Below are positions 12,548 to 46,996 of a DNA stretch of 64,000 bases, piece by piece (positions within the stretch are counted from its first letter, which is position 1; every line of letters begins with the position of its first letter). The notes below the pieces were generated by a model. That model saw only the letters and a program-made list of their open reading frames with translations. It was not told the DNA's origin and searched no databases. The DNA is from Mobula birostris (lineage: Eukaryota): the NCBI RefSeq assembly GCF_030028105.1, contig NC_092374.1:186094638-186158637 (forward strand). Direction: 5' to 3'. Position numbers and translations under genes: made by a program.

Positions 12548-12605
12548 ATGTGGACGATCGCTTGCCTTTTGCTGCTGTCCCTGCATGGAGTGTGCAATAA
12601 CGAAG
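12548..12605 (+). CDS. Ig-5TM receptor exon 1: signal peptide MWTIACLLLLSLHGVCNNE
   Basis: ATG in gagATGt, hydrophobic core IACLLLLSL, consensus donor AAG|GTAAGG in phase 1, which joins exon 2 in frame. Confidence 0.8.
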
Positions 12606-12650
12606 GTAAGGAGCCTCCATGTCGGCTTTGCAGCCGCATGGTCACGTTGA

Positions 12651-13770
12651 ATTTTGTTTTACGGCGGTTGGCATCCAGCTTAATGGTGCATTACCGCCAC
12701 CCTCTGCTCCAGAATGTGCACTAGACATACATTCTAAATCCCTTCACCCAATCACACACACACACCTACACTTCACCCTCCCATCTTTGACCATCCTAGT
12801 ATCCTATTCCTGTTTATTCGTCATATTCTATAAAAAACCCCTGTACCCCTTAAAAACGCTAAAAATACCCGGACTTGTGCTCTCTCACCCATGCCCAGCA
12901 ACCCTTTTAATGTGAATTCCTGCATCCCCAACTCCCTTAATTTATTTCTCATCATCTCTCTCTGTATCCCATACTTCCTGCAACACAAAACTACATATTC
13001 TACTGACTCCTCTTCCTGACATTCCTCACACAATCCTGTCTGGTGTTTCCCTATCATTTTCAATGTTTAGTTTAATGCACAATGCCCCAGCCTTAACCTA
13101 GTCCACACAATTTCCTCTCTTCTGTTTCCATTACCTACCCTAGTAACTGCAACACTCTTTTGTATTTGATATAAATGCCTCCCTTTCCCCTCCTTGTCCC
13201 ATCTTTCTTGCCACATTCGGTTGACTTTTTCCCAGATTACACACTTAACCTCTGCTTTACTGATACTAATGTGCATTTCCACATTTTCTTTCTTTAACGC
13301 CCTCTTTGCCAACTCATCCACCCTCTCATTCCCCTTCACCCCTACATGTGCTGGAACCCATAGAAATTTTACCTGACCTCCCTGATTTGCAATTCTTGTA
13401 ACTAACTGAAGGACTTCATAAAGTACATCTTGCCAACTGTTTATGTGAAAAGACCTTAAACTTGCTAGAACTGAGGATGAATCTGAACATATCAATGCTT
13501 TGACTTGTCTGGCTTTCTGCACCCATTGCAACGCAACCAACACCGCCAGCATCTCCACTGTAAACACTCCTAACTTATTAGATGTTCTTCTGCTGATTCC
13601 AATTTCTTTTGCTGGTATGACCACCCCAAACCCTGTCCCTCCTGTTGCAGGTTCCTTCGCACCATCCGTATAAATGTGAGTATAATCACTATACTTTTCC
13701 ATCACATGACAGTTAAATGCATTTACCAAATCTGTTTTATATCTTTCTTTCCTTTTTACCTCTAACAAAT
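12651..13770 (-). mobile_element. I-clade (Nimb-like) LINE 3' portion: RNase H + C-terminal CxxC/ExVEH region + 3' UTR
   Basis: IYTDGAK, EMLAV, ICSDSSSVL, WVPAHVGVKGNERVDELAK, TRLRLGHCALN and CEECQEEESVEY, ending in a ggtggcggtaatgcacc...ccgccgtaaaacaaaa tail. Confidence 0.88.
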
Positions 13771-13982
13771 GCCAGTCGGCGGCATGACTTTTAAAACTGC
13801 CTCACGTTTTCCGCATGGGATTTCAGCTGGGGGTGTTCATCCCCGACAAATAAAGCGTGCTCGGGGGTGACCCAACTTGGATTCGAACTCGCTCCGAACG
13901 ATGCCATTGCGTCACCAGCTGGTTGTCCTCATCGAGTTGATCGTTCCCTGGGAGGACTGCAGTCGAAAAGGAAAAATAGGCT

Positions 13983-14565
13983 GTGATTAATTCATTTATT
14001 GAAACTGAAAATCCTGACATTTTAATCGGGACTGAATCTTGGCTTGACCCTTCGATTAAATCTGCTGAGATATTCCCTCCTCATCTCCAAAGTTTTAGAA
14101 AGGACAGAAACTCTCAGGGAGGCGGTATGTTTATGGGTGTGAACAATACTATTCCTTGTTTTGAAAGAACTGACTAGGCAGCGACTTTGGTGTCAATCTA
14201 CACTTTAGGGACAAATGGTGCAGATCGGGAGTTTTTACCGTCCACCTGATGCTAATTCCGGGCCTCTGTTGGACAGTGAATCAAGCATTTCCAAAGTAAA
14301 CGCCTCGTCGCGCTCTCCGTTTATTATGCTGGCGGGTGATTTTAATGTCCCAGGTGTAGATTGTACTGACGGCACACAAAGTGAACCAAAAGGTGCCCTT
14401 CAGGAAGCCCTGGCTGATTTGATTCTGAAAAATCATCTGACTCAGAAAGTCACTTTTCCTACCAGAAGCGATGATACAGGTGGCACCGAAAACACCTTAG
14501 ATTTATTGCTGACTTCGCATCCAGATTTAATTTCAGAGGTTTCACCGATTCGTATTGAAGAGTGA
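13983..14565 (+). mobile_element. APE endonuclease fragment of a LINE distinct from the dominant CR1 in this window
   Basis: PDILIGTESWL, FRKDRNSQGGG, FYRPP, AGDFNVP and TLDLLLT motifs. Confidence 0.8.
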
Positions 14566-14655
14566 TTGCACAATCAATTGGTATTGAAGGGTGGACATTG
14601 CCAATTGGTATTGAAGAGTGGGCACAGCTGATTGGTATTGAAGGGTGGACATTCT
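14563..14655 (+). repeat. Short degenerate tandem repeat (attggtattgaagggtggacatt), continued at about 17078-17145 beyond a CR1 insertion
   Basis: The motif recurs directly on both sides of the 14656-17077 CR1. Confidence 0.55.
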
Positions 14656-17077
14656 CATAGAATTTTTTGAGGATGTAACTAGTAGAGTGGATAGGGGAGA
14701 ACCAGTGGATGTGGTATATTTGGATTTTCAAAAGGCTTTTGACAAGGTCCTGCACAGGAGATCAGTGTGCAAACTTAAAGCACACGGTATAGGGGTAAGG
14801 TATTGATGTGGATAGAGAATTGGTTGGCAGACAGGAAGCAAAGGGTGGGAATAAACAGGACCTTTTCAGAATGGCAGGCAGTGACTAGTGGGGTACCGCA
14901 AGGCTCAGTGCTGGGACCCCAGTTGTTTACAATATATATATTAATGACTTAGACAAGGGAATTAAATGCAACATCTCCAAGTTTGCGGATGACACGAAGC
15001 TGGGCGGCAGTGTTAGTTGTGAGGAGGATGCAGGGTGACTTGGATAGGTTAAGTGAGTGGGCAAATTCATGGCAGATGCAATTTAATGTGGATAAATGTG
15101 AGGTTATCCACTTTGGTGGCAAAAGCAGGAAAAAAGATTATTATCTGAATGGTGGCCAATTAGGAAAAGGGGAGGTGCAACAAGACCTGGGTGTCATTAA
15201 ACACCAGTCATTGAAAGTGGGCATGCAGGTACAGCTGGCAGTAAAAAAAGACGAATGGTATGCTGGCATTTATAGCAAGAGGATTCGAGTACAGGAGCAG
15301 GGAGGTACTACTGCAGTTGTACAAGGCCTTGGTGAGACCACCCCTGGAGTATTGTGTGCAGTTTTGGTCCCCTAATCCAGCGGACCCCAACCACCGGGCC
15401 ACGGATGCGAGGGAACGATGTGATTTGGCAATAGGAGTCAGCTGCACCTTTCCTCATTCCCTGTCACGCCCACTGTTGAGCTTGAACGCACGCGAGGTCA
15501 TTACCCGCGCGTCATCCATGTCAGCGCGGGAAGGAGATCAACGCCTCGAACTTGCAGATGACGGCGGGCTGGAAAGTATGTTTGACATAATATCTCTGCT
15601 GGCATTCTGGATCAAAGTCAAGGCTAAATATCCTGAGATAGCCACAAAAGCACTGAAAACGTTGCTTCCTTTTCCAACGTATCTCTGCAATGAATGAAAC
15701 GAAAACTAAACTGCGGAATAGACTGGACATAAGGAACCCCCTTCAAGTATCACCGTCTCCCATCACCCCTCGATAGGACCGTCTTGTTGCAGGAAAACAA
15801 GCCCAGGGCTCTCACTGATTCAGCGATATTTGTGTGTTGCAATGATTTTATATGTTCATACGGGGAAAATATGTGCTGCGTGTTTAATATCCAAAAGATA
15901 CTTAAAATGTTACAATGCAATTGACTTATATAACCATATAACAATTACAGCACGGAAACAGGCCATCTGTGCCCTTCTAGTCCGTGCCAAACGCTACTCT
16001 CACCTAGTCCCACCGACCCGCACTCAGCCCATAACCCTCCATTCCTTTTCTGTCCGTATACCTATCCAATTTTTTTTTAGATAATAATATCGAACTTGCC
16101 TCTACCACTTCTACTGGAAGTTCGTTCAACTTTTACTTCAAGCTCCCGTGTCCTCCCCTGATAATTGACTTATCACTATGTTCATGCGAGGAAAATATGC
16201 GCTGTGTGTTTAATATTAAATTCATTAGATAAACCCTTTTAGAAACAAAATTGAGTGTATTAGCTAATTATCATCTATATTGCGGTCGTGATTAACACCC
16301 CACCCCGAACAGAATCGCCAAAAACGATTTGTAGAAAAAAATCGTACACGCATGCGCACTGGTGCCCGTGCAAGGCTTCATAGTCAATGTAGTCTTCGGG
16401 GTAAACCCAGCGTATTTGACTGCTACTCTTGTCCATTGGCACCCTGCCCGTCCCCCCCCCCCCCCCCCCCCCCGGGTCGGCCGGTCCGCAAGAATATTGT
16501 CAATATGAAACCGGTCAACAGTGCAAAAAAGGTTGGGGACCCCTGCCCTAATCTGAGGAAAGACATTCTCGCCATAGAGGGAGTACAAAGAAGGTTCACC
16601 AGTTTGATTCCTGGGATGGCAGGACTTTCATATGATGAAAGACTGGATCGACTAGGCTTATACTCTCTGGAATTTAGAAGATTGAGGGGGGATCTTATTG
16701 AAACATATAAAATTCTGAAGGGATTGGACAGGCTAGATGCAGGAAGATTGTTCCCAATGTTGGGGAAGTCCAGAATGAGAGGTCACAGTTTGAGGATAAA
16801 GGGGAAGCCTTTTAGGATCGAGATAGGAAAAACTTCTTCACACAGAGAGTGGTTGAATCTGTGGAATTCTCTGTCACATTAAGCAGTTGAGGCCAGTTCA
16901 TTGGTTATATTTAAGAGGGAGTTAGATATGGCCCTTGTGGCTAAAGGGATCGGGGGTATGGAGGGAAGGCTGGTACAGGGTTCTGAGTTGGATGATCAGC
17001 CATGATCATACTGAATGGTGGTGCAGTCTCGAGGGGCCGAATGGCCGACTCCTGCATCTATTTTCTATGTTTCTATT
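14656..17077 (+). mobile_element. CR1 LINE RT and 3' end, interrupted by a hAT element
   Basis: DVVYLDFQKAFDKV, GVPQGSVLGP, FADDTK and [10 protein letters not shown]|NLRKDILAIEG, with the frame resuming after the hAT; ends in a tttctat tail. Confidence 0.92.
15378..16545 (+). mobile_element. Non-autonomous hAT (Buster/Charlie-type) with transposase C-terminal remnant; nested CR1 tail at about 15930-16140
   Basis: TIRs cagcggaccccaacc / ggttggggacccctg; 8-bp TSD ccctaatc at 15370-15377 and 16546-16553; [28 protein letters not shown]...LRNRLD dimerisation domain. Confidence 0.92.
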
Positions 17078-17204
17078 ACACAGCTGATTGGTGTTGAAAG
17101 GTGATTGCATAGCAGATTGGATAGAAGGGTGGACATTACCATTGTATAGAAGCACAGCTTTCAGGCTTAGCACTGAAGAATAAACAGCAAAGGCTCAATT
17201 GGGT

Positions 17205-18628
17205 TGTTTGGTATTGGGTCCGCGCAGACTCCATCTTCCTCTCACTCCACCATTTCTGAACACCCTAAACCACCCTTTTCCTCAGACATTACCACTCCAC
17301 TCCACTCTGCCATCAACTTCCACCCTGCCCTCAAATTTACCTGGTCCATTTCTGACACCTCCCTCCCCTTTCTCGATCTCTCTGTCTCTATCTCTGGAGG
17401 CAGCTTATCTGCTGAAGTCTATTACAAACCTATAGCTAGCTGGACTATACCTCATCCCACCCTGTTACTTGTAAAAATGCCAACTCTTCTCTCAATTCCT
17501 CCATCTCCTCCGCATCTGCTCTCAGGATGAGACTTTTCATTCCAGAATGAAAGAGATGTCCTCCTCCTTCAAAGAAAGGGGCTCCCTTCCCCCACCATCA
17601 ACAGTGCCCTCAACTGTATGTCTTCGATTTCACCCACGTCTACACTCATCCCAACCTCCTGCCACCCTACAAGGGATAGGGTTCCTCTTGTCCTCAGCTA
17701 CCACACCACCAGCCTTCGCATCCAGCACATAATTCTTGAAACTTCTGCCATCTCCAATGAGATCCCACCACCAAACATATCTTTCCTCTCCCCCCGCCCC
17801 ACCAATTTCTGCTTTCAGTAGGGGTTATTCCCTATGTGACTTCCTTGTACATTTATCCCTCCCCACTGATCTTCCTCCTGGCACTTATCCTTGTAAGCAG
17901 AACAAGTGCTACACCTGTCCCTACACCTCCTCCCTCACGACCATTCAGGGCCCCAAACAGTCCTTCCAGGTGAGGCGACACTTCACCTGTGAGTCTGTTG
18001 GGGTTATATACTGTGTCCAGTGCTCCCGATGTGGCTTCCTGTATATTGGTGAGACCCCACGTAGATTGGGAGACCGCTTCGCCGAGCATCTACGGTCCAT
18101 CTGCCAGAAAATGCGGGCTCTCCCAGTGGCCACCCATTTTAATTCCACTTCCCATCACATTCCAACATGTCTATCCATGGCTCACTCCACTGTCGTGATG
18201 AGGCCACACTGAGGTTGGAGGAACAACACCTTATATTCTGTCTGGGTAGCCTCCAGCCTGATGGTATGAACATTGACTTCTTGAACTTCTGGTAATGCCA
18301 CCCACTCCCTCCCCCCCTTCACCATTCCCCCTCCTCTTTTCCCTCTCTCACCTCATCTCCTTGCCTGCCCATTGCCTCCCTCTGGTGCTCCTCCACCCTT
18401 TACTTTCTTCCCTGGCCTTCTGTCCTCTTCTGTCAGACTCCCTCCTTCTCCACCCCTGTATGTCTTTCACCAATGAACTTCCCAGTTCTTTACCTCATCC
18501 CTCCCCCTTCAGGTTTCACCTATCACCTCGTGTTTCTCTCTCTTCTCTCCCCCACCCACCTTTTAAATCTACTCCTCAGCTTTTTTTCTCCAGTCCTGAC
18601 AAAGGGTCTCAGCCCGAAATGTGGCCTG
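17205..18628 (+). mobile_element. Penelope-like element 3' half (RT thumb, GIY-YIG, tail)
   Basis: NFHPALKFTWSIS, CKQNKCYTC, GVIYCVQCSRCGFLYIGET; hammerhead-like motif at 18591-18628. Confidence 0.88.
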
Positions 18629-19500
18629 TCTGATGACACAAAGGTTGGGGGTGTTGTGTGGAGAGTTGTCAGAAGTTACAGCGGGGCATCGATAGGATGC
18701 AGAGCTGGGCTGAGAAGTGGCAGATGGAGTTCAACCCAGATAAGTGTGAAGTGGTTCATTTTGGTAGGTCAAATTTGAAAGCAGAACACAGTATAAATGG
18801 TAAGGCTCTTGGCAGTGTGGAAGATCCGAGATATCTTGGGGTCTGTGCCCATAGGACACTCAAAGCAGGTTGACAGTGTTGTTAAGAAGGCATATAGTGT
18901 GTTAGCGTGGGTTTGAGTTCAAGAGCCATGAGGTAATGTTGCAGCCATATAAGACTTGGTGAGACCCCTCTTGGAGTACTGTGTTCAGTTCTGGTCACCT
19001 CACTACAGGAAGGATGTGGGTACTATAGAGAGAGTACAGAGGAAATTTACAAGGATGTTGCCTGGATTGGAGGGTGTACCTTATGGGAATAGGTTAAGTG
19101 GACTTAGCCTTTTCTCCTTGGAGCGATGTAGAATGAGAGGTGACCTGATAGAGGTGTATAAGATGATGAGAGGCATTGATTTGTGTGGATAGCCAGGGTT
19201 TTTTTTCCCCAGGGCTGAAATGGCTAACACAAGGGGGCATAGTTTTAAGGTGTTTGGAAGTAGGTACCGAGGGGATGCCAGGGGTATGTTTTTCACACAG
19301 AGGGTGGTGGGTGTGTGGAATGCACTGCCGGCGGTGGTGGAAGCGGATACAGTAGGGTCTTTTAAGAGCCTCTTAGATGGATACATGGAGCTTAGAAAAA
19401 TAGAGGGCTATGCGCTAGGGAAATTCTAGGCAGTTTCTAGAGTATGTTACATGGCCAGCACAACATTATGGGCCGAAGGGCCTGTAATATACTGTAGATT
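18629..19500 (+). mobile_element. CR1 LINE 3' fragment
   Basis: [29 protein letters not shown] and RMRGDLIEVYK motifs. Confidence 0.85.
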
Positions 19501-19799
19501 TCTATGTTCTGTGTTCCACTTTTTGCTGTAGATGCTGCCTGTTCTGCTGAGTTCCTGTAGCATTTTTTGTGTGTTGCTTGGATTTCGAACATCTGCAGAT
19601 TTTCTCTTGCTTTCCATTGTTGTGGGTCATGTTGGCAACCCAAAGTATGCCCATGCTTGGGCAAGATAGAAAACTTTTTAACTTACATTGTGGGCAACAT
19701 TTTAAATGACTTGAATTATAAATTGAAATAACATCTATAGGGGATTCCAAAATATGGTACATCATAGGGAAATTTCAAGGTGATTTTCATGATCACTAG

Positions 19800-21885
19800 C
19801 CCAGAATCCACAAGATAAACCCAACCATATTCGGGAAGCATAATCTTTGTTGTCCAGTGTAATCATTCGATCACAATGCTGCATGATGGTATCTCCAAAC
19901 AAGGCACAGTCCATCACAATGCATTTCAAATCATAGTCAGAGACTTCAACCTGGCTTTTTTGAAGATAACCCTGCCCAATTACCACCTCCATATAACCTG
20001 TAGCACCAGAGGTCCCAACACATCAAAGCACTGTTATACTCGGATAAGGAATGTTCCATGCCCAGACCACATCTCGGTAAATTCGATCGCTTGACTGTCA
20101 TTCTGCCTGCATTGAGTCAGAAGCTAAAGAGCAAAGCTCCAGAGATTAGGACAACAAAGCAGCGGTTGCAGGAGACAGAGCAGCGGCTAAGGGATTGCTT
20201 TGAGTCATTAGACTAGGTTGTGTTTGAGGACTTAAAGAAACATAGAAAACCTACAGCACAATACAGGCCATTCGACCCACAAAACTACCGAACATGTTCT
20301 TACCTTAGAAATTACCTAGGGTTACCCATCGCCCTCTATTTTTCTGAGCTGCATGTATCTGTCACTCATCCGGGCATCTGAATGAATACACCATGTAATG
20401 GACTTGAAACAGCTGTAGATGAGAGTGTCCTCACAAAATCATTCAGTTTTCCCCAAGCTGAAGCCCTGGATGAAGCATGAGATCCAAAATCTGCTGACGG
20501 CCAAGAAAATTGCAAGAGGTCCACATAGGATCTCCAGAAAGCCATCTCACTGGAGAACTGGCAGTTTTGGACTACACAGGAATCAACGAAGAATGCTCAA
20601 CAGGGCTTGAATACTGTCACCGCTTACAAAGTTTAATCAGGTGACATAGGCAAGAACAGGGCTTTGCTTCCAGATGAACTAGTCAGAGTGATCAGCAGCA
20701 GTCTCCCTTTCTCTTCACCATTTACACCTGGGACTTCAACTACTGTACAGAGTCTTGTCATCTTCAGAAGTTTTCTGATGACTCTGCCATAGTTGGATGC
20801 ATCAGGAAGGGAGATGAGGCTGAGTGCAGGGCTACGGTAGGAAACTTTGTCACATGGTGTGAGCAGAATTGTCTGCAACTTAATGTGAAAAAGTCTAAGG
20901 AGCTGGTGGTAGACCTGAGGAAAGCTAAGGTACCGGCGACCCCTGTTTCCATCCAGGGGGTCAGGGTGGACATGGTGGAGGATTACAAATACCTGGGGAT
21001 ACGAATTGACAATAAACTGGATGGGTCAAAGAACACTGAGGCTGTCTACAAGAAGGGTCAGAGCCGTCTCTATTTCCTGAGGAGACTGAGGTCCTTTAAC
21101 ATCTGCCGGACGATGCTGAGGATGTTCTACGAGTCTGTGGTGGCCAGTGCAATCATGTTTGCTGTTGAGTGCTGGGGCAGCAAGCTGAAGGTAGCAGACA
21201 CCAACAGAATCAACAAACTCATTCGTAAGGCCAGTGATGTTGTGGGGATGGAACTGGATTCTCTGACGGTGGTGTCTGAAAAGAGGATGCTGTCCAAGTT
21301 GCATGCCATCTTGGACAATGTCTCCCATCCACTACATAATGTACTGGTTGGGCACAGGAGTACATTCAGCCAGAGACTCATTCCACCGAGGTGTAACACA
21401 GAGCGCCATAGGAAGTCATTCCTGCCTGTGGCCATCAAACTTTACAACTCCTCCCTTGGAGGGTCAGACACCCTGAGCCAATAGGCTGGTCCTGGACTTA
21501 TTTCCGGGCATAATTTACATATTACTATTTAACTATTTATGGTGTTATTACTATTTATTATTTATGGAGCAACTGTAACGAAAACCAATTTCCCCTGGGA
21601 TCAATAAAGTATGACTATGACTATGTCCTTCTAAGCTCACTTTGACCATCAAAACATGGAGGAACCACCACAAACTCCTACAGTCCCTGATGATCCTGTG
21701 ATTCCAATCTCTTGGGGCTGATGTGCGAGCAGCCTTCGGGAGTGTGAACCCATGAAAAGCTTCTCGCCAAGTACTAAAGACCTGCACTGGAGTGTTTGCG
21801 GAGATCTTTAACCTCTGACTTTGTCAGTCTGAGGTACCCACCGGCTTCAGGCAGACGTCACCTATACCAGTAATTTGCACGTGGA
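19800..21885 (+). mobile_element. Older Rex1/Babar LINE containing a nested, better-preserved Rex1/Babar 3' end (about 20700-21626)
   Basis: HITCSTRGPNT and FPKLKPWM upstream. The nested copy has a 199-aa open C-terminus (KELVVD, YKYLG, SRLYFLRRLRSF, SHPLH) and tail gatcaataaagtatgactatgactatg. The older copy resumes at about 21633. Confidence 0.85.
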
Positions 21886-24395: not shown

Positions 24396-27300
24396 AAAGT
24401 AATAGAGAGTACCCCTGTGGCTGTGGCTGTGCCCCTTGACAATAAGTACTCCTGTTTGATTACAGTTGGGGGGGACAGCATACCTGGGGGAAGCAACACT
24501 GGCCGTGCCTCTGGCACGGAGTCGAGCCCTGTAGGTAAGAAGGATAGGGAACGGCAGAGGAGGGCAATAGTAATAGGGGACTCAATAGTTAGGGAGTCAG
24601 ATAGACGATTCTGTGGATGAAGTCAGGAGACCCGGATGGTAGCTTGCCTCCCTGGTGCAAGGGTCTGTAATGTTTCTGATCACGTCCAAGAGATCTTGAA
24701 ATGGGAGGGAGAGGAGCCAGAGGTCATGGTACGTAAAGGTACCAATGACATAGGTTGGAAAAGGGAAGAGGTCCTGAAAGAAGAATATAGGAAGGGAGTT
24801 GAGAAAAAGGACGACAAAGGCAGTAATCTCGGGATTACTGCCTGTGCCACGCGACAGTGAGAGTGGGAATGGAATGAGGTGGAGGATAAATACATGACTG
24901 AGAGATTGGAGCAAGGGGCAGGGATTCGGGTTTTTGGATCATTGGGACCACTATTGGCGCAGGCATGACCTGTACAAAGGGGCGGGTTGCACTTGAATCA
25001 TAGGGGGACCAATATCCTGGCGGGGAGATTTGCGAGGGCTACTAAGGTGACTTTAAACTAGAATGGTTGGGGGAGGGAATCAAATTAAGGAGCCTAGGAG
25101 AGGGGAGGTTGATATAGGGGGAAAAAGAAGAAGAAGGTAACAAAGTTGTTTGCTTAATTAAGGATAAACAGAGAGTGGGAGGGGGAAGAGTTTCTTAAAT
25201 GCATCTATTTTAATGCTAGGAGCATTGTAAGAAAGGTGGATGAGCCTAGAGCATGGATTGATAGCTATTAGTGAAATGTTGTTGCAGGAGGGGTGTGATT
25301 GGCAACTAAATATTCCAGGATTTCGTTGCTTCAGATGTGATAGAATAGGATGGGCAAGAGGGGGAGGTGTTGCATTGCTTGTCAGAGATTATATAACAGC
25401 AGAGCTCTGGCAGGATAGATTAGTGGACTCGTCTAGGGAGGCTATTTGGGTGAAATTGAGAGGAATAGGAAAAGTGTTGTGACGCTTATAGGGGTGTATT
25501 ATAGACCACCTAATGGGGACCGAGAACTGGAGGAGCAAATTTGTAAGGAGATAGCAGATATTTGTAGTAAGCACAAGGTTGTGATTGTGGGAGATTTTAA
25601 TTTTCCACACGTAGACTGGGAAGCCCATTCTGTAAAAGGGCTGGATGGTTTGGAGTTTGTAAAATGTGTGCAGGATAGTTCTTTGAAGCAATACATAGAG
25701 GTACCAACTAGAGAAGGGGCAGTGTTGGATCTCCTGTTAGGGAATGAGTCAGGGCAGGTAATGGAGGTATTTGTTGGGGAGCACTTCGGGTCCAGTAATC
25801 ACAATACAATTAGTTTCAGGCTATGTCCACACTACGCCGGATAATTTTGAAAACGCTGGTTTTGAGTAAAAACGACGGGCATCCACACTAGGCATTTTTC
25901 AAAATATCGCCGTCCACATTAGACGGATATTTGGGCGAATCTCCTACTGGGCATGCGCAGGACACACACAGAAAACAAGTGAGGAGGAAACGGTAAACTT
26001 GGTGCACGTTTGTCCAGTTACAGAGTAGAAAAACTTAAAAGGACTTGCTCTTGGCTCTCGCGCAGGAGGACTTAAAACTAAAAAAAAACAAATACTGGAG
26101 CATATGGAGGCAACCGACAGGAAGTTCATGGACAGTATGACCCAGCTGACGAACATTGAAAAACTGACCAACACTGTTGCATTAATAAAGCACCTTGTTA
26201 AATGTATAAAACATTTGCATCAGCGTTATCTTGTATTTCTATACAATGTTATATTAGCCTGTTACACATCTATTGTCAGAGAAGTACTTGCATGAAGAGG
26301 TGAACCACCTTCGTACAAGCAAGGACAGAAAACAGGGCAGAATGAATATACTTATTTATTCAGTATGCTATGAGTCAAAGTATTTGGTGAGTACATTTCT
26401 AACCCTTCTGGCTTCAGTCTCGTTGCCGTCTGTTCTGAAATTGTTAGGTGGTTGCGTTCAAGAAAACAACGAAATGCCGCACTGTGGCTATCTGTTCCGG
26501 CATGTCATGACAGCGTTTTTAAATAATCAAAAAAGCTCACTTTACAATTTAACTCTCACGCCACTCACACCGACTGCGCGTTATAACAGTTTGCGCAGTA
26601 CCAAGCAGAAGCAGAAAAAAGCATTGTTGTTGAGGTGTTGTCATGACAGTGTTTTTAAATCTCTCCGGTTACCCCGTACACACTACAACGGATATTAGGT
26701 GTTTTCAGATTTATTCATTCTGGAGATCGTTTCTGAAAATTTCTGTTTTCGGGGGATGAAAACGCTGTTTCAGTGTGGACAGAAGGTCAAAACGAAGAGA
26801 AAAGGCTTAGTTTTCAAAATTATCCGGTGTATTGTGGACGTACCCTCTGTGTAATTATGGAGAAGGATAGGACTGGACCTAGGATTGAGATTTTTGATTG
26901 GAGAAAGGCTAACTTTGAGGAGATGCGAAAGGATTTAGAAGGAGTGGATTGGGAAAATTTGTTTTATGGGAAGGATGTAACGGAGAAATGGAGGTAGTTT
27001 AAAGGTGAAATTTTGAGGGTTCAGAATTTTTATGTTCCTGTTAGGTTGAAAGGAAAGGTTAAAAGTTTGAGAGAGCCATGGTTTTCAAGAAATATTAGAA
27101 ACTTCGTTCAGAAAAAGAGAGGGATCTTCAATAAATATGAGCAGCTTGGAGTTAATGAGATACTCGAGGAATATAAAGAATGTAAAAAGAATCTTAAAGA
27201 AATTAGGAAAGCTAAAAGAAGATACGAGGCTGCTACGAGGAATAGTCTACATGGATTTGTGCGTGGAAGGTCATGTTTGACAAATCTTAATGAGTTTTTT

Positions 27301-28530
27301 GATGAGGTTACTAAGAAAGTTGACGAGGGTAAAACGGTGGATGTTGTCTATATGGACTTCAGTAAGGCCTGTGACAAGGTTCCACACGGAAGGTTAGTTA
27401 GGAAGGTTCAATCGTTAGGTGTTAATATGGAAGTAGTAAGATGGATTCAGCAGTGGCTGGATGGGAGACGCCAGAGAGTAGTGGTGGATAACTGTGTCTC
27501 AGATTGGTGGACGGTGTGTAGTGGTGTGCCTCAGGGATCTGTACTGGGTCCAATGTTGTTTGTAATATATATTAATGATCTGGATGATGGGGTGGTAAAT
27601 TGGATTTGTAAGTATGCAGATGATACTAAGATAGGTGGAGTTGTGGATGATGTGGTAGGTTTTCAAAACTTGCAGAGAGATATCGGATAGTTAGAAGAGT
27701 GGGCTGAAAGGTGGCAGATGGAGTTTAATGCTGAAAAATGTGAGGTACTACATTTTGGTAGAACTAATCAAAATAGGACATACATGGTAAATGGTAGTGC
27801 ATTAAAGAATGCTTTAGAACAGAGGGATCTAGGAATAATGGTACATAGTTCCCTGAAGATGGAATCTCATGTGGATAGGGTGGTGAAGAAAGCTTTTGAT
27901 TTGCTGGCTTTTATTAATCAGAACATTGAGTATAGGAGTTGGGATGTAATGTTGAAATTGTATAAGGCATTGGTAAAGCCAAATCTGGAGTATTGTGTAC
28001 AGTTCTAGTCACCGAATTATAGGAAAGATGTCAATAAAATTGAGAGAGTACAGAGGAGGTTTACTAAAATGTTACCTGGGTTTCATCTCCTAAGTTACAG
28101 AGAAAGGTTGAACAAGTTAGGTCTTTATTCTTTGGAGAGTAGAAGGTTGAGGGGGGATTTGATAGAGGTGTTTAAAATTATGAGGGGGATTGATAGAGTT
28201 GACGTGGTTAGACTTTTTCCATTGAGAGTGGGGAAGATTCAAACAAGAAGACATGGGTTGAGAATTAGAGGACAAAAGTTTAGGGGTAACATGAGGGGGA
28301 ACTTCTTCACTCAGAGAGTGGTAGCTGTGTGGAACGAGCTTCCAGCAGAAGTGGTTGAGGCAGGTTCGATGTTGTCGTTTAAAGTTGAATTGGATATGGA
28401 CAGGAAAGGAATAGATGGTTTTGGGCTGAGTGCAGGTCGGTGGGACTAGGATAGGGTAAGAGTTCGGCATGGACGAGAAGGGCCTAGATGGCCTGTTTCC
28501 ATGCTGTAATTGTTATATGGTTATATGGAT
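24396..28530 (+). mobile_element. CR1 LINE (ORF1 esterase, APE, internally deleted RT, 3' end) interrupted by Harbinger
   Basis: IVIGDSIVR, CLPGARV, GVYYRPP, VGDFNFP, GRSCLTNL, GVPQGSVLGP and YADDTK; tail tggttatatgg. Confidence 0.9.
25818..26846. mobile_element. PIF/Harbinger internal-deletion derivative
   Basis: About 37-bp TIRs aggctatgtccacactacgccggataattttgaaaac vs agggtacgtccacaatacaccggataattttgaaaac (rc of the right end). Plus-strand MEATDRKFMDSMTQL and minus-strand EARRVRNVLTKYFDS* remnants. TSD is not clean. Confidence 0.75.
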
Positions 28531-29969: not shown

Positions 29970-30278
29970 TCAACAGAGAAGATGCCATTGCAATGCTTGG
30001 TTCATCAGTTTTACTGGATTCGGAAGTCGAAGTTAACCCGCAGAAGCAAGAGATCGTTTGGACATTCATCAGCAGCCACAACAGCCCTGTCACCATTTTA
30101 CATCACATCCCGAATTACAAGAAGTGGGTAGAGCCCAGTGAACAGTTCAAGTTGCGCCTGGGTTTTATTCTTTCCAATGGTTCTTTGATGATAAATGGAT
30201 TAAAAGTCAGGGACGAAGGAGATTACAGTTTGGATGTAGATGGCCGTGAACTGAAAATAATACATTTGTCCCTCTTCG
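29970..30278 (+). CDS. Ig-5TM receptor exon 2: Cys-less IgV domain (CD2/SLAM/CEACAM/HEPACAM N-domain type)
   Basis: Acceptor ttcttttcttgccctcatcag, donor G|GTGAGT, phase 1-1, 309 nt. Sequence LGSSVLL, EIVW, LSNGSLMINGLKVRDEGDYSL; B- and F-strand Cys are absent. Confidence 0.92.
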
Positions 30279-31389: not shown

Positions 31390-31469
31390 GCATATCCCAG
31401 CTTGGAACGTGAGCTGCACAGATACGTGGCTGAAAGGCAAGTCCTCCCTTCCCCCCGCACTTGATGAAA

Positions 31470-32990: not shown

Positions 32991-33118
32991 GTTAGGGTTA
33001 GTGAGTTGTGTTCATGCTATGTTAGCGTGTCAGCACGTCTGGACTGCACAGTCACAAAACAACATATTTAACTACACGTTATTGAAGTACAAATAAAGCT
33101 AGTCTTTCTGCCCTTTAG

Positions 33119-33379
33119 ATAACCTGTTGGAAGCTACGATATTGACCAGCTCCTCCTTCCCTGCTTCTGCTATCTGGCTCATCTGCAACGTCAGTGGAGA
33201 TCCTCAAAAGTATCAATGGTGGAAAAATGGAGCGGAAATCCCCCGACTTCACCAACTTATCGATGGCAATCGGACTCTAATGATCATGGATGCCTCAAGA
33301 CATGACTGTGGAATTTATACCTGCGCGGCAACCAATCCAGTCAGCTTCATCCAGGCTAACCACACCCTATTCATTTCTG
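33119..33379 (+). CDS. Ig-5TM receptor exon 3: IgC2 domain
   Basis: Acceptor gtctttctgccctttag, donor G|GTGAGT, phase 1-1, 261 nt. Sequence WLICNVSG..YQWWKNG..NRTLMI..DCGIYTCAATNPVS; N-glycosylation sequons NVS, NRT, NHT. Confidence 0.93.
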
Positions 33380-35020: not shown

Positions 35021-35049
35021 TATGTAACCTGTCATCAAATGGGGGGTGT

Positions 35050-38700: not shown

Positions 38701-39605
38701 TCTCCTGATTCAGTGGACAATGAGCTAAGAGTAGTGGTTAGAAATTGAAATAATGTATTGTCATCTACCATAATCCTTGTACCGTTCTATTTTGCTGATG
38801 AGTAACCACTTTCTGTGGATAGTCATAGTCATACTTTATTGATCCCAGGGGAAATTGGTTTTCATTACGGTTGCACCATGGTAGCCATGGTAACAGTTGG
38901 TAACGTTTTTTTTCCCTAAAAATAACCACACTAACCCATGATATGTGTTCCTTTTAATTTGTTATTTATTTATGAGATACAGTACGGAATATGCCCTTCG
39001 AGCCGTGCCACCCAGCAATCCCTCGATTTAGTTCTCGCCTCATCATGGGACAATTTGCAACGATCAATTGACCTCCCAGCCAGTATGCCTTTGGACTGTG
39101 GGAGGAAACCCTTGCAGTCAAGGGGAGAATGTACAAACTCCTTACTGGCTGCAGTGGGAATTGAACCTGGGACGCTGGTACTGTAAAGCGTTGTGCTAAC
39201 CACTACACTACGTGTGGTCCCATGGTAACGTAGCTCTTCTACGACTTGCATCTTAATCCCTGGTCAGGTGACCTGCTGAGGAGCCGGGGTTAGCAACGTG
39301 TCTTCTGGGCCTGGGGAAAGAATATCCGTCACGCCTCAAGTTTTGCATCTTCTGTCAGTTTGGAATGTTGCTCAGAGTTGTTCATTCTTGGCTGGAACAG
39401 CAAGTTGCTGTCTAGTAAGTGCTCCTGAGAGGGCATGTAGAGCATGTTGGTACAGGCGTGAAGTCACAGGCTGGTGAAACGGGTCAGGGGCTGGCGCTTT
39501 CCCATCCCTGCAGGAGATGAAGGGAACCGTAGGCTTGTTGCAATTCATAGCAAATCCCTTTGTTGTCTCTGTGTAACATTGTTCAAAGTTATTTTTTAAT
39601 TGCAG

Positions 39606-39707
39606 GTTTTCATCAAGAGGACGTTGCAATAATTGTTCTGTCGGTGATCTCTTCGGTGCTTTCTATTTTGCAGTGCTCGCAGTGCTTGCTGCTGAAGACA
39701 GACAGAG
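39606..39707 (+). CDS. Ig-5TM receptor exon 4: TM1 (GFHQEDVAIIVLSVISSVLSILQCSQCLLLKTDR)
   Basis: Acceptor ttattttttaattgcag, donor AGAG|GTATTT, 102 nt, phase 1-1, open frame. Confidence 0.75.
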
Positions 39708-41131
39708 GTATTTATCACTGTGTCCCAAATGAATGAAAGGAATCCTGGTTATTTTCTTGACTTAATTTTTGTTCTTTAAGAATTGTCTCAAATATGTGGC
39801 TGCCCTGATTAACCGATGGCCCAGTTAACTGGAATCCACTGCACGTACTGTAGAGCTCACCATATACTAAGTGGAGTTTCATTTTCTTGCAAGCTTTTAC
39901 AGGAATGTAAAGAAATACATTTGAATTTATGAAAACCTTTACATAAAGACTGACGAACAGCCAATGTGCAAAAGAAAACAAATTGTGCAAATAATTTAAA
40001 TAAATAATATTGAGAACATGAGTGGTAGAGTCCTTAAAAGTGAGTCTGTAGGTTGTGGGATCAGTTTAGAGTTGAGATGAGTGAGTGAGGGGGCTAAGCA
40101 CACAAACTGTGCTGATGGTAATTGTGGAGGAGATGTCTTTGCCAATCTGAACTGACTGGGATCTGCAAGTGAGGAAATCAAGGAGGGATTGATTACAATT
40201 GTTGACTTACACAGGGAGGTATTGGGGCATTCAAATTTCAGGGCTGGAATTTGAAGGGTCACACACAGCCCTCTCTCTCTCCTCCTCTCCCCCTCCCTAG
40301 TGCACAGCCCTCGCACACTCAGCTCCCTCCCTCCCTCTCTGATACACATAAGCTCTTCAAATCCCAGTTGAGCACCACTTCCTGGAGAGTAACGGAGGGT
40401 CCCGATAGATGCTGGACCAACCAGCAAAACCCCAATGAATTAAAAGCACCAGGGGAAGGAGAGGTGTCCCTCGGACCACATGCTGGAAGATCCCTCAAAA
40501 CTGGTTCATCAGTTGCCAGTGGGCTCCCTGGACAAACACCACTTGTTCACTGCTTAGTGTCTCTGCATTCAGGCATTTTGGCCTGCAGCCCCATTTGGGG
40601 TACAGATTCCACCCTGGACTAGAACACTGTCTAGTGCCCGAGAGCATCCAGGTACAGTGATGACCCAGTCCTTGGCCTCGCAGCAGAGTTCAGGGTGAAA
40701 CTGCAACTTCTGGGCTGCTGTAGGTTAATGCTACCCCAGCTCCCATAATCATTGGGATGATGCACACATGATTCACATTGTATTCTTTCCTCCTCCACTG
40801 GGCTCACACACAGGGAGACTGCATTCTATCTGTCTTTTCCGTATTCAGCCCATGGATAGTCAGATGGCATAGTAGGAGATGAGCTGTTTTCTGGTGCTTT
40901 TTGCTCCTCTCTGCTGTCTCCTCTTTGCTGCCAGTGTCCGTCAGCTCTGAGACTCCTCCAGTGCTCTGGTGGCTACTCCACCCCCGGGCTGGTATTTGAG
41001 TTGAGTGCCACCAGCAGCCTGACTGGTCCCGAGTCCCAGCTCCGTTACCGCGAGCTCGCTCTCTGATTCCTGTGTCCAACCATTTATGTAGGTCTCACAT
41101 TTGGACTGTTCTGGATTTTTCTTGATTGCAG

Positions 41132-41245
41132 CTGTGAGGCGGGTCAAATGCTTGAGGCAGTTCCTGGGTATCTGTACCTTCATGACCTACGTCACGACCG
41201 TCATGACCTGTGTCGCGACCCTCATCAAACTTATCCCCACGAAAG
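41132..41245 (+). CDS. Ig-5TM receptor exon 5: basic loop + TM2 (AVRRVKCLRQFLGICTFMTYVTTVMTCVATLIKLIPTK)
   Basis: Acceptor gatttttcttgattgcag, donor AAAG|GTACGT, 114 nt, phase 1-1. Confidence 0.8.
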
Positions 41246-41464
41246 GTACGTGTGTGATGTTCTGCATGTGGATTGTTCTGATCAGTGTGGGATTCAGCAC
41301 ACCCTCCACCTTCACATCCAGCACTCAAGGACAGGCAGGGTGGGTATCTGGACTCCAGAAGGCATGTGAAGGAACTGGTAAATTAAAGGCATAATTATAA
41401 AGCTGGGAAAACAGTTGTTGGTTCAGTGTGTAGGGGTAACCTGCAGGGGCTGAAGTTGGCAGGA

Positions 41465-42000
41465 TTTGGGTCATGGTGCTGTACAGGAATGTGTGGTGGG
41501 CCTTTTGGAGGAAGGAGGTGGAATCTTTCACGAGGTGATTTCCCAGGATGCTGCCTGGACTAGAGCTTGTCTCCTAGGACAGGTTGAGCGAGCTAGGACC
41601 TTCTCATCAGTGGAAAGGGGGATGAGAGGTGACTTGAGAGAATTATACAAGGTAAGAAGCGTAGATCGAGTAAATAGCCAGAGACTTCTTCCCCAGAGCT
41701 GAAACAAGGAGGCACAATTTTAAGATAGGTATAGAAGAGATGTTAGAGGCAGTTTTTGTTTTAATACACAGAGATTGGTGGGTGTGTGGAATACCCTGCC
41801 AGGGGTGGTGAAAGAGGTAGATACATTAGGGGCATATGATAACTCTTGGGCACTTGGAGGAGAGAGAAAATGCAAAGCTATGTAGGATGAGAGGAAAATG
41901 GAAAGTGACGAAGGAGGGATGGGTTCGATTGATCTTAGACTAGGTTAAGAGGTCGACACAACACCATGTGACAAGGGCTCTACTGTTCTGTGGAGTGCTA
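41465..42000 (+). mobile_element. Decayed CR1 3' end
   Basis: FSSVERGMRGDLRELYK remnant and CR1 tail. Confidence 0.65.
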
Positions 42001-42444
42001 TGCAACTGGTCCTTGGATTGACTGGGCTGATGATGTGAAATGCGACTTTACCAAGTTGGTCAAGTTTGATCGGAGAGGTGACATTGTGAACTAACTGGCA
42101 GAATGAATCACCAGAGATGAATAGATTATGCAAACAGGCAGAACTTCAACAAATGGATTTCATTGTAGTTACCGGTCAGTAAATATGTGTCATGTGCCCC
42201 AGATTTTGAAAAAGGACAGGACAAGAGTGGATACTAAAGAAGAAACTGTGGAGACTTGAGCTGCAGATACTGGAATCTGGAACCGCAAATAACCTGCTGC
42301 AGGATCTCAGTGCATCAGTCAGCATCTGTGGGAGGCGGAAGGACTCTGGACATTTCCTGGGTGAAACCCTACATCAGTAACTTGCACTCCAAAAACAGAT
42401 AGAAATGGGCTCTTTGAACTGAATCCTTACCATTTATTGAGCAT

Positions 42445-43110
42445 CCGCTTGCCTTCTATATATGGGCAAGACCCAACGCAGACTGGGAGACCGCTTTGCT
42501 GAACACTTACGCTCTGTCCGCCAGAGAAAGCAGGATCTCCCAGTGGCCACACATTTTAATTCCACATCCCATTCCCATTCTGACATGTCTATCCACGGCC
42601 TCCTCTACTGTAAAGATAAAGCCACACTCAGGTTGGAGGAACAACACCTTATATTCTGTCTGGGTAGCCTCCAACCCGATGGCATGAACATTGACTTCTC
42701 TAACTTCCGCTAATGCCCCACCTCCACCTCGTACCCCATCCGTTATTTATTTTTATACACACATTTTTTCTCTCACTCTCCTTTTTCTCCCTCTGTCCCT
42801 CTGACCATACCCCTTGCCCATCCTCTGGGTTCCCCCCCGCCTTGTCTTTCTCCCCGGGCCTCCTGTCCCATGATCCTCTCATATCCCCTTTGCCAATCAC
42901 CTGTCCAGCTCTTGGCTCCATCCCTCCCCCTCCTGTCTTCTCCTATCATTTCGGATCTCCCCCTCCCCCTCCCCCTCCCACTTTCAAATCTCTTACTAAC
43001 TCTACCTTCAGTTAGTCCTGACCAAGGGACTGGGCCTGAAACGTCGACTGTACCTCTTCCTAGAGATGCTGCCTGGCCTGCTGCATTACCAGCAACTTTG
43101 ATGTGTGTTG
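42445..43110 (+). mobile_element. Penelope-like element 3' end with hammerhead-like motif (43013-43050)
   Basis: YMGKTQRRLGDRFAEH...GSLQPDGMNIDFSNFR*, near-identical to 3732-3962. Confidence 0.9.
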
Positions 43111-44262
43111 GTTGGGGCATCTGGGACCAGGAGACCTGGGGCTAGGGTCAATTGCATAGTACTGTTCTGTTTGTTTTAATATTAGGAATCGCTTTTCCCC
43201 AGAGTGAAAAGAAGTAATATTCTGTCTGGAAATTCAATGGGGCACGAGGGGCATCAGTCACTTTTGCTTGGCCGGTGATGTCATTCCCTGTATGACAATT
43301 TCCGGTAGGGGAACTGCAAGTTAATTGGACCATGCTGTCCTGGGAGTTCCCGCACTGGGCGGTCCCAGGGCCATTCTCTTTCATCACTGCAGCTCCAAAC
43401 TCTAGGATGCCTTCCAGATGTTAGTCACTGAACTTCATCCACCAGGTCTTCAGAGTGTCCTGACTTTTCTTCACCCACACCTCTGCACACCTGCTTGAAT
43501 TGTTCACGTAAACATGTTTGCAACATTCAAGGTCAGGCGGCGTCTCTGTAGTGAGAGGTGGACAGTGAAATGCTGTCTACCCCCCCCCCACACTGTTTGC
43601 AACGACGTACCTCTTTGCACCAGTGGTGAACCCAGTGATGATTCTCCCATCATCTGAGTCGGTCTGGAGAGCCGGTGGTTCAGGTCTGTCACTGTCAGGT
43701 GGAGTGAGGTTAGAAATCTGTGTTTCCTTTTGCAGAGATGGGTGAAGGGCTGAGCTGAAGAAAGTGAACTGTGTGGAGGGGCGGAGACCAGGAGAGCCTT
43801 TCGAGTGTCTCACCCTGGTCTGGTCTACCCACAGCTGGTGAGAGGGCAGTTCAGGGGAACAAATGCTAAGGGGTGTAACAAAAAGGAATGAAGAGAAATA
43901 AAAGAAAGAATGGCACTTCTGAACAATCTATCAATTCTATAGATAAGATGAAGAAAATTCCTTAGTGATAATTTAGTCAATAGGCTACATAATTAAAACA
44001 ATTACATCACATGGGCAATGCTTGTTAAAAAGTACAAATTTTATAAAAAGTATTATTTTTAAAAAAGTGGTTTCCAACAAGAGGTTTCACCCTCAGGTGA
44101 AGCAGGTGAAAAGCAGATCCAGCATTGCCCCCTCTACAGGAACAGTATATAAAGCACAGTTCTGGGGAAGTTACAGAATGGAAATCCTGCGTCTCGTTGT
44201 TTAATTTCCTGTTTATTACTGAGTGAACCGCTGACCATTGCTGTGGGGTCTTTGCTCCCCAG

Positions 44263-44370
44263 GTTCGGACCCTGTCGTAGTAGCGGTTTATTGCACAGTG
44301 TCCCTTCAGCTTCTGACTTCGGGTCTGCTGCTCGTTGTCCACTGGCTAGACAGTCTCAAAGAGAGGGCAG
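44263..44370 (+). CDS. Ig-5TM receptor exon 6: TM3 (GSDPVVVAVYCTVSLQLLTSGLLLVVHWLDSLKERA)
   Basis: Acceptor gtctttgctccccag, donor GCAG|GTAAGA, 108 nt, phase 1-1. Confidence 0.82.
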
Positions 44371-44573
44371 GTAAGAGACTGGATCATTCAATGTACAACC
44401 TCTCAGTGAAGGAAAGGAATGGAGGGATATGGGCTGGATGCAGGTCGGTGGGACTAAGTGAGAGTAAGAGTTCGGCATGGACTAGAAGGGCCGAGGTGGC
44501 CTGTTTCCGTGCTGTAATTGTTATATGGTTATATGGTTAATGCACTGTAATTGTCACACTTTGTATTTGACAG

Positions 44574-44660
44574 CTATTTTGGAAAGGACCGTAGCTGGAC
44601 TTCATGTCATCGTGATCATCACTTCAGTCGTTTTTTTAGAATTATTAAGTCATCCAGACT
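44574..44660 (+). CDS. Ig-5TM receptor exon 7: TM4 (AILERTVAGLHVIVIITSVVFLELLSHPD)
   Basis: Acceptor cacactttgtatttgacag, donor ACT|GTGAGT, 87 nt, phase 1-1. Confidence 0.8.
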
Positions 44661-45399
44661 GTGAGTTTGCCTAGAGCTCTTCATCATTGTTTATGGCAAT
44701 GCATGGTTTTGATCATTTTCTATGTTACACACACACACACACAGTTGGTTTATTGATCACTGCAGAGTGGCTCTCTGCTGCTTCCTGCTCCCTCCCTTCT
44801 CCTTTCCCCAACCACATTGTCCCTCTCCCTGACCCCTTCCCACTCTCAGTCCACAATAGAGACCCATATCAGAATCAGGTTTTTCATCACTCACATATGG
44901 CATGAAATCTGTTTAACTTTTTGTTTCCAGCAGCAATACATAAACTTACTACTGTACTGTCTCAAAGTGTTAGGCACCCAAGCAAGACTGTACTTAGGAG
45001 ACAGAAGGGATGAACTTGGAAAAGTTAATAATTATGAAAGGCAGAGATGAGCTGGACAGTCTTTTCCCCAGGGTCGGGAAGTTGAAAACACGAGGGCATA
45101 GATTTAGGTTGAGAGGGGAAAGATCTGAAACAGACCTGAAGGACAGTTTCTTTTAAAACAGAGTGTGATCAGGGTATGGAACAATTTAACAGAGGAACAG
45201 GTTGAGACAGGTACAATACCAGAAGCTCTGGAAAGTGTTTAACACATGGACAGGTACATGGAGGGACGGGCCATGCACCATCCTGTCTTTGCCATTGCTC
45301 TGTGAGTTTGCTGTGGAAGGTGCATTGGATGTTTACTGTACTGTGGATGTGGGCACTTGGTGTCAGTTTACTCAGTTTCATCATGTTGCACATTTTCAG

Positions 45400-45498
45400 A
45401 TCAAGGCTGTGAAAGCAGCTTTATTGTCTGGATGGTATTCTTTGGAGCAGTGATCGTGGGTGCTGTGGTCTTTCTCTTCAACTTCGTGGTCCAACGCC
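45400..45498 (+). CDS. Ig-5TM receptor exon 8: extracellular Cys loop + TM5 (YQGCESSFIVWMVFFGAVIVGAVVFLFNFVVQR)
   Basis: Acceptor ttgcacattttcag, donor GCC|GTAAGT, 99 nt, phase 1-1, strongly hydrophobic. Confidence 0.85.
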
Positions 45499-46865
45499 GT
45501 AAGTAAATACCAAACCATTCAGCAGCTGCTGTATCGCTTCCCAGAGTAAAGACCTTCCCCCGATCTCACAGCCGCTTCAGCTCCTACGAGGGTTTCCCGG
45601 GCTCTGCTTGAGTTCCCTCACGGAGCTGCTGGCCGTGCAGGTGGGGTTTTGGACTCCTGCTGGGACGTAGAAGTGAACAACCTCCCAGCTGAACTCCAGT
45701 GATACCCCACTGGGCTCCGTGGAGACTGATGGAGAGGTCTGACAGAGCGCAGAATAGGCCCCTCGAGCCGTGCCGTCCAGCAAACCTCAATTTAATCCGA
45801 GCTTAATCACAGGACAGTTTGCAGTGGTACGTCTCTGGACTGTGGGAGGAAACCCACACGGCCATGGCGAGAGCGTACAAACTCCTTACAGGCAGTGGCG
45901 GGAATTGGACCCAGGTTGCTGGTACAGTAAAGCATTGTGCTGACCACTACATTACCGCAAAATCTGTAAAGGTTCGATTTCTTAGATGGAATCAAAGATG
46001 CAAATGAAGGCATCAACACTGAAGAAACAGCACCAGATATTTTGTTAAAATAGATTCCTACTGTTTGTCAAAATTTCATTTTATGTGTTTAGAAATTGAT
46101 TAATTTACACCTAAAAATTAATACATTGTGTGTTCATAATGCTGCTCTCTCTTGGACACTGATTCACCCAGCCCAGAGAATCTGGGGTACATACTGTGAC
46201 CTCACTGTAGCACAGGGGGGCTCACCGGATCCAGAACCCATGTCTTACAGAAATTGCCCCATTACTTAAGAAAGAATCTTTTTCAGGTTTGCAATAATGA
46301 AATGTTTACAGTAGTACAAGATACATTGTGTGTTCTGAGTTAATTATGGTTGTGTTAGAGTAAATGTTGGAAATTATCATTAAAATGAAAGGACAAGTTG
46401 TTAAGGTTTATGTTGAGAATTCAGGAGAATTGTTTTGAGAGGGAAAATAGGTCAGCCATGATGGAATAGTGGAGCAGACTCGATGGGCCAAATGGTCTAG
46501 TTCTGATGTGTAGGCAGGGCGATGTGATATGGGTAGCTACAGGAAAGAGATGTTCCTGCTTTACATAAAGATTAGTTTACAAACAGCTCTTGGGAACTGA
46601 GGTCTTGTGTAACACCGCGTCTATCTGTATACAGTTTCTCTTGAAGTTATAGAACTACCTTGTCTATTCACATTCCCCAGTTAACTTGTAGAGATTGCCT
46701 GTTATTGAAATATTCTCTGTGAGTTGGTACCTGGATTCCTCAGTCTGCCGCAGTCTCTGTAGGCATGTCCTTCTCCGCGTGTCACCCTTCCCCTTGGCGT
46801 GATGCTTCTGTTGATTGACTGGGATTCACCTACTTCCTGTAACAAATGCACTTTTGTCATTTTAG

Positions 46866-46996
46866 TATCCTGCAGAAAGGAAAATTCTGAAATGGACCCA
46901 CCAGATCCCACAGCTTCTGATGAACTTCTGATGTCTGATTTAAAAAGCATACAGCAATCTTCATTTTCAGACAACATTCCCAGTTCGAAGCCTTAA
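46866..46996 (+). CDS. Ig-5TM receptor probable last coding exon: cytoplasmic tail (LSCRKENSEMDPPDPTASDELLMSDLKSIQQSSFSDNIPSSKP*)
   Basis: Acceptor cttttgtcattttag, phase 1; gives QRLSCRK (basic residues) right after TM5. Choice of tail exon is less certain than the upstream exons. Confidence 0.6.

Follow-up and report, generated by a model that had tools for sequence, protein, structure and literature searches.

A giant manta ray gene joining a CD2/SLAM/CEACAM-like ectodomain to five predicted membrane helices belongs to a shark and ray multigene family

We analyzed a 64,000-nt stretch of the giant manta ray (Mobula birostris) genome (NCBI RefSeq assembly GCF_030028105.1, contig NC_092374.1, positions 186,094,638 to 186,158,637 of the forward strand; hereafter the window, numbered from its first nucleotide), in which an earlier note had proposed a "hidden" nine-exon gene for an immunoglobulin (Ig) receptor with five membrane passes. 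Nine GT-AG exons were rebuilt from the raw sequence between 12548 and 46996 on the plus strand, and they join into the uninterrupted frame of 1269 nt (422 codons plus a TAA stop) that the note had described. All internal exons are in phase 1, with AG acceptors and GT donors at consensus splice sites. Open frames and splice sites gave eight of the exons, 108 nt short of the full 1269 nt, and a scan for phase-1 AG...GT exons between the fifth (E5) and the seventh (E7) returned one hydrophobic candidate of 108 nt, at 44263-44370. The translated model was 100% identical over all 422 residues to protein P0197, named "uncharacterized protein [Mobula birostris]" at NCBI. P0197 is an independent gene model that supports the nine-exon structure; the gene is therefore not hidden, since RefSeq already holds the exact 422-residue product.

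The exons encode, in the order that the earlier note had given and that Pfam, hydropathy and the cysteine count upheld, a signal peptide, a cysteine-free V-type Ig domain (IgV), a C2-type Ig domain (IgC2), five hydrophobic segments on five exons (TM1 to TM5) and an acidic tail. E1 (12548-12605; residues 1-19 and the first base of codon 20) starts with ATG followed by a hydrophobic leader and ends at the donor AAG|gtaagg, and its N-terminus is identical in P0197. E2 (29970-30278; residues 20-122) carries the IgV, with a Pfam V-set match. E3 (33119-33379; residues 123-209) carries the IgC2, with Pfam Ig_3/I-set matches, the cysteine pair Cys145/Cys191 and an extra Cys186. E4 (39606-39707; residues 210-243) holds TM1, placed by a hydropathy peak at 216-234 and by the family alignment, with a nearly invariant Ser222 and the start of a basic loop; E5 (41132-41245; residues 244-281) holds the remainder of that inside loop and TM2, marked by a hydropathy peak and an RNA joint. 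TM3 lies on E6 (44263-44370; residues 282-317, the first being a nearly invariant Gly282), and TM4 on E7 (44574-44660; residues 318-346, with His328 and a nearly invariant Ser335, placed in addition by the alignment). E8 (45400-45498; residues 347-379) encodes an outside loop with a conserved Cys350 in a GCE motif, followed by TM5; E6, E7 and E8 each have RNA joints on both sides. E9 (46866-46996; residues 380-422, with the TAA stop at 46994-46996) encodes an acidic, serine-rich cytoplasmic tail that lacks tyrosine. By tblastn, neither paralogous exons nor an alternative first exon was found within the window.

RNA contigs from four public runs were aligned to 41100-47000, which covers E5 to E9. 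The joints 41245|44263 (X1, X2, X5), 44370|44574, 44660|45400 and 45498|46866 were observed, and one RNA contig (X5) extends beyond the stop into the 3' untranslated region. Of the eight junctions that the note had proposed to check against RNA, these four were found, in contigs of close relatives. A 1264-nt contig runs from E7 to E5 and continues for 953 nt further upstream; as E4 to E1 amount to 730 nt, this extension suffices for them plus a 5' untranslated region. The contigs were 2-7% different from the window and their variable residues resembled M. hypostoma proteins or a manta paralogue, so the RNA support comes from close relatives or paralogues and not certainly from this copy. The locus holds an intact gene, and its closest relatives are transcribed.

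Since RNA joints were found on both sides of E6, the TM3 exon is truly spliced in; E6 is moreover present in P0197 and in M. hypostoma proteins. Two candidates were rejected on these grounds: E6 as a chance open reading frame (ORF) beside the tail of a long interspersed nuclear element (LINE), and an eight-exon model with four helices. As a separate observation, a LINE 3' end fragment (a ...GYGL.AGRWD frame that recurs many times in the window) does lie at 44380-44470 in the E6-E7 intron, directly behind the E6 donor.

The ectodomain is supported as CD2/SLAM/CEACAM-like by several sequence and structure comparisons. E2 matched the Pfam V-set model at 3e-6 as an exon alone and at 4.9e-10 within the whole protein. 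The Pfam 2B4 model (PF11465) scored 18.4 bits against a cut-off of 21, i.e., below threshold, and no Pfam 2B4, SLAM or CD2 model exceeded its curated cut-off on the window protein. The IgV (residues 20-122) has zero cysteines, and its nearest solved relatives by sequence were CD48/CD2, PVR and CEACAM1. E3 matched Ig_3 (5e-11) and I-set (4e-10), with CEA and CEACAM1 as the best PDB sequence matches of the IgC2; besides the canonical Cys145/Cys191 pair, this domain has its extra Cys186 within a D-x-G-x-Y-x-C motif. All four N-glycosylation sequons of the protein are located in the ectodomain. The best structural matches of the ectodomain were CD48, CD58, CD2 and NTB-A, and the top Foldseek matches among Swiss-Prot models were HEPACAM/HEPACAM2 and the CTX/CAR group (CLMP, CXADR, IGSF11).

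Behind the Ig domains, five hydropathy peaks lie on E4-E8, one per exon. The basic loop after TM1 (KTDRAVRRVKCLRQ) and the QRLSCRK that follows TM5, from which the note had predicted a five-pass protein with its N-terminus outside and its C-terminus inside, are both present in the rebuilt protein. Across 33 family members the mean number of lysines plus arginines was 2.7, 3.2 and 3.0 in the inside loops and 0.7 and 1.1 in the outside loops. Because these loop charges fit the positive-inside pattern, the sequences are consistent with five spans and an N-out, C-in topology. For structure modelling an M. hypostoma protein of 87% identity was used. The AlphaFold2 model of this whole protein, built on a family alignment of 36 sequences, showed two Ig domains and five long helices at a mean predicted local distance difference test score (pLDDT) of 79, and that of the module alone showed five helices at pLDDT 78. 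Hydropathy and AlphaFold2 thus both gave five helices, and not one or two. In the family alignment the nearly invariant residues of the bundle are Ser222 and Ser335, together with His328 in rays. The 45-residue tail contains 8 acidic residues and 11 serines or threonines and no tyrosine (none after residue 377). When the module was compared with Pfam, only scattered sub-threshold matches appeared (MARVEL at 0.003 in one member, 5TMR_LYT in two). The idea that internal duplication had produced the five exons was rejected, as hhalign gave at most 0.2% probability between the five exon profiles.

The loop between TM4 and TM5 carries a conserved G-C-[ED] motif in the family alignment. Among its 36 sequences, 26 have both the extra IgC2 cysteine and the loop cysteine, two have both replaced (P0031 from a shark and P0033 from a ray) and one is a mismatch, the remaining sequences being without one of the two regions. 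The D-x-G turn corresponds, in the usual Ig topology, to the E-F turn and so lies where the domain has its C-terminal end. Since the E-F end of a membrane-proximal IgC2 faces the membrane, a bond between Cys186 and Cys350 would be geometrically reasonable, and the co-occurrence points to a probable clamp disulfide Cys186-Cys350 in the style of CD47. In CD47 the Cys33-Cys263 bond links the IgV to the membrane domain and is required for SIRP-alpha binding and signalling (PMC10902115).

The gene has many relatives. A full HMMER pass of the IgV exon against 1.84 billion representative sequences gave at least 142 matches, many of them 390-440 residues long, and a locally iterated hidden Markov model of the membrane part defined a common module of ~167 residues in 63 retrieved sequences, which correspond to about 45 representatives when clustered at 50% identity. 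The members with a name were without exception elasmobranch proteins, from 16 species, and included the rays Mobula birostris, M. hypostoma, Pristis, Hemitrygon and Hypanus, and the sharks Mustelus, Cetorhinus, Carcharodon, Hemiscyllium, Chiloscyllium, Stegostoma, Rhincodon, Scyliorhinus, Heterodontus and Heptranchias. No member from outside the elasmobranchs stood among the best 142 IgV matches listed or the 61 full-length profile matches (8000 word-sharing candidates scored), which leaves absence elsewhere unproven. A profile search for stand-alone module proteins among candidates of 98-308 residues gave only one family fragment, and a word search that started from one sequence, the module of a Pristis protein, matched only its own gene and was uninformative on relatives. 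At NCBI the members are called "uncharacterized protein" or bear automatic HEPACAM-, CEACAM1-, PTK7-, VEGFR2-, LRIG1-, contactin- or 2B4-like names, "HEPACAM-like" being the commonest of the automatic ones. Names and species thus agree with the note's suggestion of a poorly characterised elasmobranch family of multi-pass Ig receptors. The gene and its relatives exist in databases as predictions, and in full-text literature searches no paper came up that describes a cartilaginous fish family of Ig-plus-five-helix proteins.

In a maximum-likelihood tree of 33 members, sharks were separated from rays at 100/100 support, which indicates separate expansion of the family in the two groups; the window gene falls together with genes of M. 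hypostoma, Hemitrygon and Hypanus, the ray grouping having 100/100 support. The family is multigene within M. birostris as well, P0210 and P0211 being paralogue proteins of this species. A Hemiscyllium gene, compared with its DNA, has a leader exon, IgV, IgC2, five one-helix exons and then tail exons. As this is the same plan as in the window, the exon design is older than the split of sharks and rays. Mean pairwise identity was about 50% in the Ig domains, 26% in the membrane module and 16.5% in the tail; the module and the tail drift faster than the conserved Ig domains.

Two variations on the plan were observed. In some predicted isoforms a single helix exon is missing (TM3 in P0009 and TM2 in P0014, both from Pristis, and TM4 in P0210/P0211); all helix exons being in phase 1, such isoforms keep the frame, and the topology downstream of the skipped helix would flip. 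P0024 and P0058 combine a closely related IgV with a single membrane helix and with tail motifs resembling immunoreceptor tyrosine-based switch or inhibitory motifs (ITSM/ITIM), TPYAEL plus VEYATV and TTYENI plus SVYSEL. The same type of ectodomain thus occurs on different membrane modules.

On balance, these results are probably best explained by a five-pass surface glycoprotein with a type I start, one member of a shark-and-ray multigene family, that would work as follows: i) the signal peptide would be cleaved, leaving two Ig domains outside, five helices across the membrane and the acidic tail in the cytosol; ii) the conserved, disulfide-free V domain would offer the binding face for a CD2/SLAM-like partner on another cell, which may be a second copy of the protein or a different member of the family (compare CD2-CD58, CD48-2B4 and SLAM-SLAM); iii) a bond between Cys186, in the IgC2 E-F turn, and Cys350 would clamp the ectodomain to the helices below it, in the way known for Cys33-Cys263 of CD47; iv) as a tyrosine motif is absent from the tail, output would pass through lateral contacts of the bundle (Ser222, Ser335, His328), or else the protein may mainly be a displayed ligand. 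Partners within the wider family are plausible, since P0024 and P0058, with their related IgV, carry single-pass ITSM/ITIM-like tails.

Several points weigh against this explanation. The residues of the RNA contigs are typical of paralogues or of M. hypostoma, and at most ~60% of the sequence words of the IgV exon were present in any run. The joints E1|E2, E2|E3, E3|E4 and E4|E5 have indirect support; we accept them because of the identical RefSeq model, the 1264-nt contig and the same architecture in 16 species. The putative clamp is deduced from co-occurrence among related, non-independent sequences plus Ig geometry, and P0021 has the loop cysteine without the extra Ig cysteine. The high conservation of the IgV fits a fixed partner without identifying which. 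Finally, the tail of the window gene is 45 residues shorter than that of M. hypostoma, through a recent stop.

The alternative that survives best is a true but very diverged relationship with CD47: the module would be homologous to the multiple-membrane-spanning domain of CD47, both deriving from one ancestral Ig-plus-five-helix gene, and the second Ig domain would have been kept or gained in elasmobranchs. In both, an Ig domain is followed by five helices, and the short tails vary by exon use. The ray gene has one exon per helix, and the constant exons of CD47, ahead of its tail exons, encode ectodomain and membrane domain (PMC10902115). The conserved cysteine lies in the same last outside loop and co-occurs with an Ig cysteine. 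Moreover, a language-model feature search with the membrane part alone placed the CD47/OPG166 cluster first, at a score of 0.67, which is far below 0.9 and hence a lead only.

On the other hand, sequence and shape searches gave no link to CD47. The Pfam model of the CD47 membrane region (PF04549) matched none of 10 full-length members at E up to 0.1, none of 23 isolated modules at E up to 1, and neither the window protein nor its C-terminal half at E up to 10; likewise, a search of PDB sequences with the family profile (E up to 10) returned no chain of CD47. Foldseek with the module model against PDB and Swiss-Prot models gave nothing better than E 0.2, and CD47 was not among its best matches nor among those of VIA-align (48,161 chains) or the Atlas shape search, these methods being weak on helix bundles and the module model having a pLDDT of 78. 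The V domain, furthermore, is cysteine-free, unlike that of CD47. Thus of the "CD47-like" membrane module that the earlier note had claimed, the architecture stands (five helices, each on its own exon, and a probable disulfide that links the Ig domain to the last outside loop), while homology in sequence or fold was not detected by Pfam, the PDB profile, Foldseek, VIA-align or Atlas. We regard common ancestry with CD47 as a tentative but live possibility.

Less probable is that this copy is decaying towards a pseudogene, marked by the stop that removes 45 tail residues. The TAA at 46994-46996 occupies a Gln position of M. hypostoma, and behind it the tail frame stays open and conserved for another 45 codons (46997-47131, plus strand), which are coding in M. 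hypostoma; tblastn of the M. hypostoma tail gave 86.5% identity across the stop. In addition, no RNA run contained the exons of this copy word for word. Against decay, however, the frame is open in all nine exons and their splice sites match the consensus. P0210 and P0211, the paralogue proteins of M. birostris, also terminate at this SSKP, so that the shortening is recent and shared within the species. As family tails differ widely in length and sequence (the 16.5% mean identity given above), a shorter tail also falls within family variation, and decay of this copy is possible but unlikely.

Finally, it is highly improbable that the model is an artefact in which the gene of a single-pass Ig receptor has been fused with an unrelated four-helix gene downstream of it: E4 alone would give an ordinary Ig receptor with one membrane helix, and E3|E4 and E4|E5 lack direct RNA evidence, but the identical RefSeq model, the upstream reach of the 1264-nt contig, the recurrence of the IgV-IgC2-five-helix order in 16 species and of the exon plan in a shark gene, the lack of a stand-alone module protein among the 98-308-residue candidates and the co-occurrence of Ig and loop cysteines all speak for a single gene.

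Around the exons, retroelement ORFs fill introns and flanks, at 13070-13768 (minus strand), 27013-27687 (plus), 2601-3131 (plus) and 56612-57646 (minus), with Pfam matches to RNase H (5.6e-16) and reverse transcriptase (2.8e-18, 2e-4 and 1e-6), and the 17-kb first intron consists mostly of retroelement repeats. In the E5-E6 intron, the RNA contig depth over 42479-43266 exceeded that over the exons by a factor of 10^4-10^5 in each of the four runs, and many small joints lay within the segment, which is a transcribed, highly repeated element and no part of the gene. An ORF repeated at 17736-18209, 3219-3689 and 42462-42710 (all plus strand) contains a GIY...YIGET...RL..R..EH-type stretch, which we take, without confirmation, to recall the GIY-YIG endonuclease of Penelope-like elements; the copies at 17736-18209 and 42462-42710 had no Pfam match at E up to 0.001.

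The family represents a second Ig-plus-five-helix design, with several to many genes per species in at least 16 sharks and rays, and the genome around it encodes many CD2/SLAM-like receptors. It offers a natural test of what a multi-pass anchor and a clamp disulfide bring to an Ig recognition molecule. If ancestry is shared with CD47, sharks and rays would keep dozens of copies of a two-domain, CD2-like version of the design seen in CD47, clamp disulfide included, and this would reveal the origin of the odd membrane domain of that protein. A proper definition of the family would correct the misleading automatic names (HEPACAM-, CEACAM1-, PTK7-, VEGFR2-, contactin- and LRIG1-like).

Surface receptors of the Ig superfamily are almost always single-pass or anchored by glycosylphosphatidylinositol (GPI), CD47 being the textbook exception. 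HEPACAM/HEPACAM2 and the CTX/CAR group resemble the ray protein in their IgV-IgC2 ectodomain, but the Foldseek matches end at or just past the first helix (query residue ~255), and those proteins are single-pass with long tails. CEACAM1/CEA share a cysteine-free N domain followed by an IgC2, and some family members are named "CEACAM1-like" at NCBI; the ray anchor, in contrast, is multi-pass without ITIM/ITSM, whereas CEACAM anchors are single-pass with ITIM/ITSM or GPI, and the published CEACAM surveys covering cartilaginous fish mention, as far as consulted, no multi-pass members.

With the CD2/SLAM group (CD2, CD48, CD58, 2B4, NTB-A, SLAM) the ray protein shares a V domain without intersheet disulfide, followed by a C2 domain with one. 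It differs in its five helices, where the group has a single helix or a GPI anchor, and in 2B4 and SLAM Pfam scores below the curated cut-offs; moreover, as its tail has no tyrosine, it has no ITSM (TxYxxV/I), unlike the SLAM subfamily.

CD47 has a single IgV with a canonical disulfide, Cys41-Cys114. The ray protein, by comparison, has two Ig domains, a V domain without any cysteine and a proposed clamp that starts from the IgC2 E-F turn, and the elasmobranch genes form a large multigene family as opposed to a single gene. Yet in CD47 and its poxvirus copies (OPG166), as in the ray protein, an Ig ectodomain directly precedes five helices and a short cytoplasmic tail; in CD47, too, the membrane part is divided over several small exons, and a cysteine of the last outside loop is paired with an Ig cysteine (Cys33-Cys263, PMC10902115), as is proposed for the ray protein.

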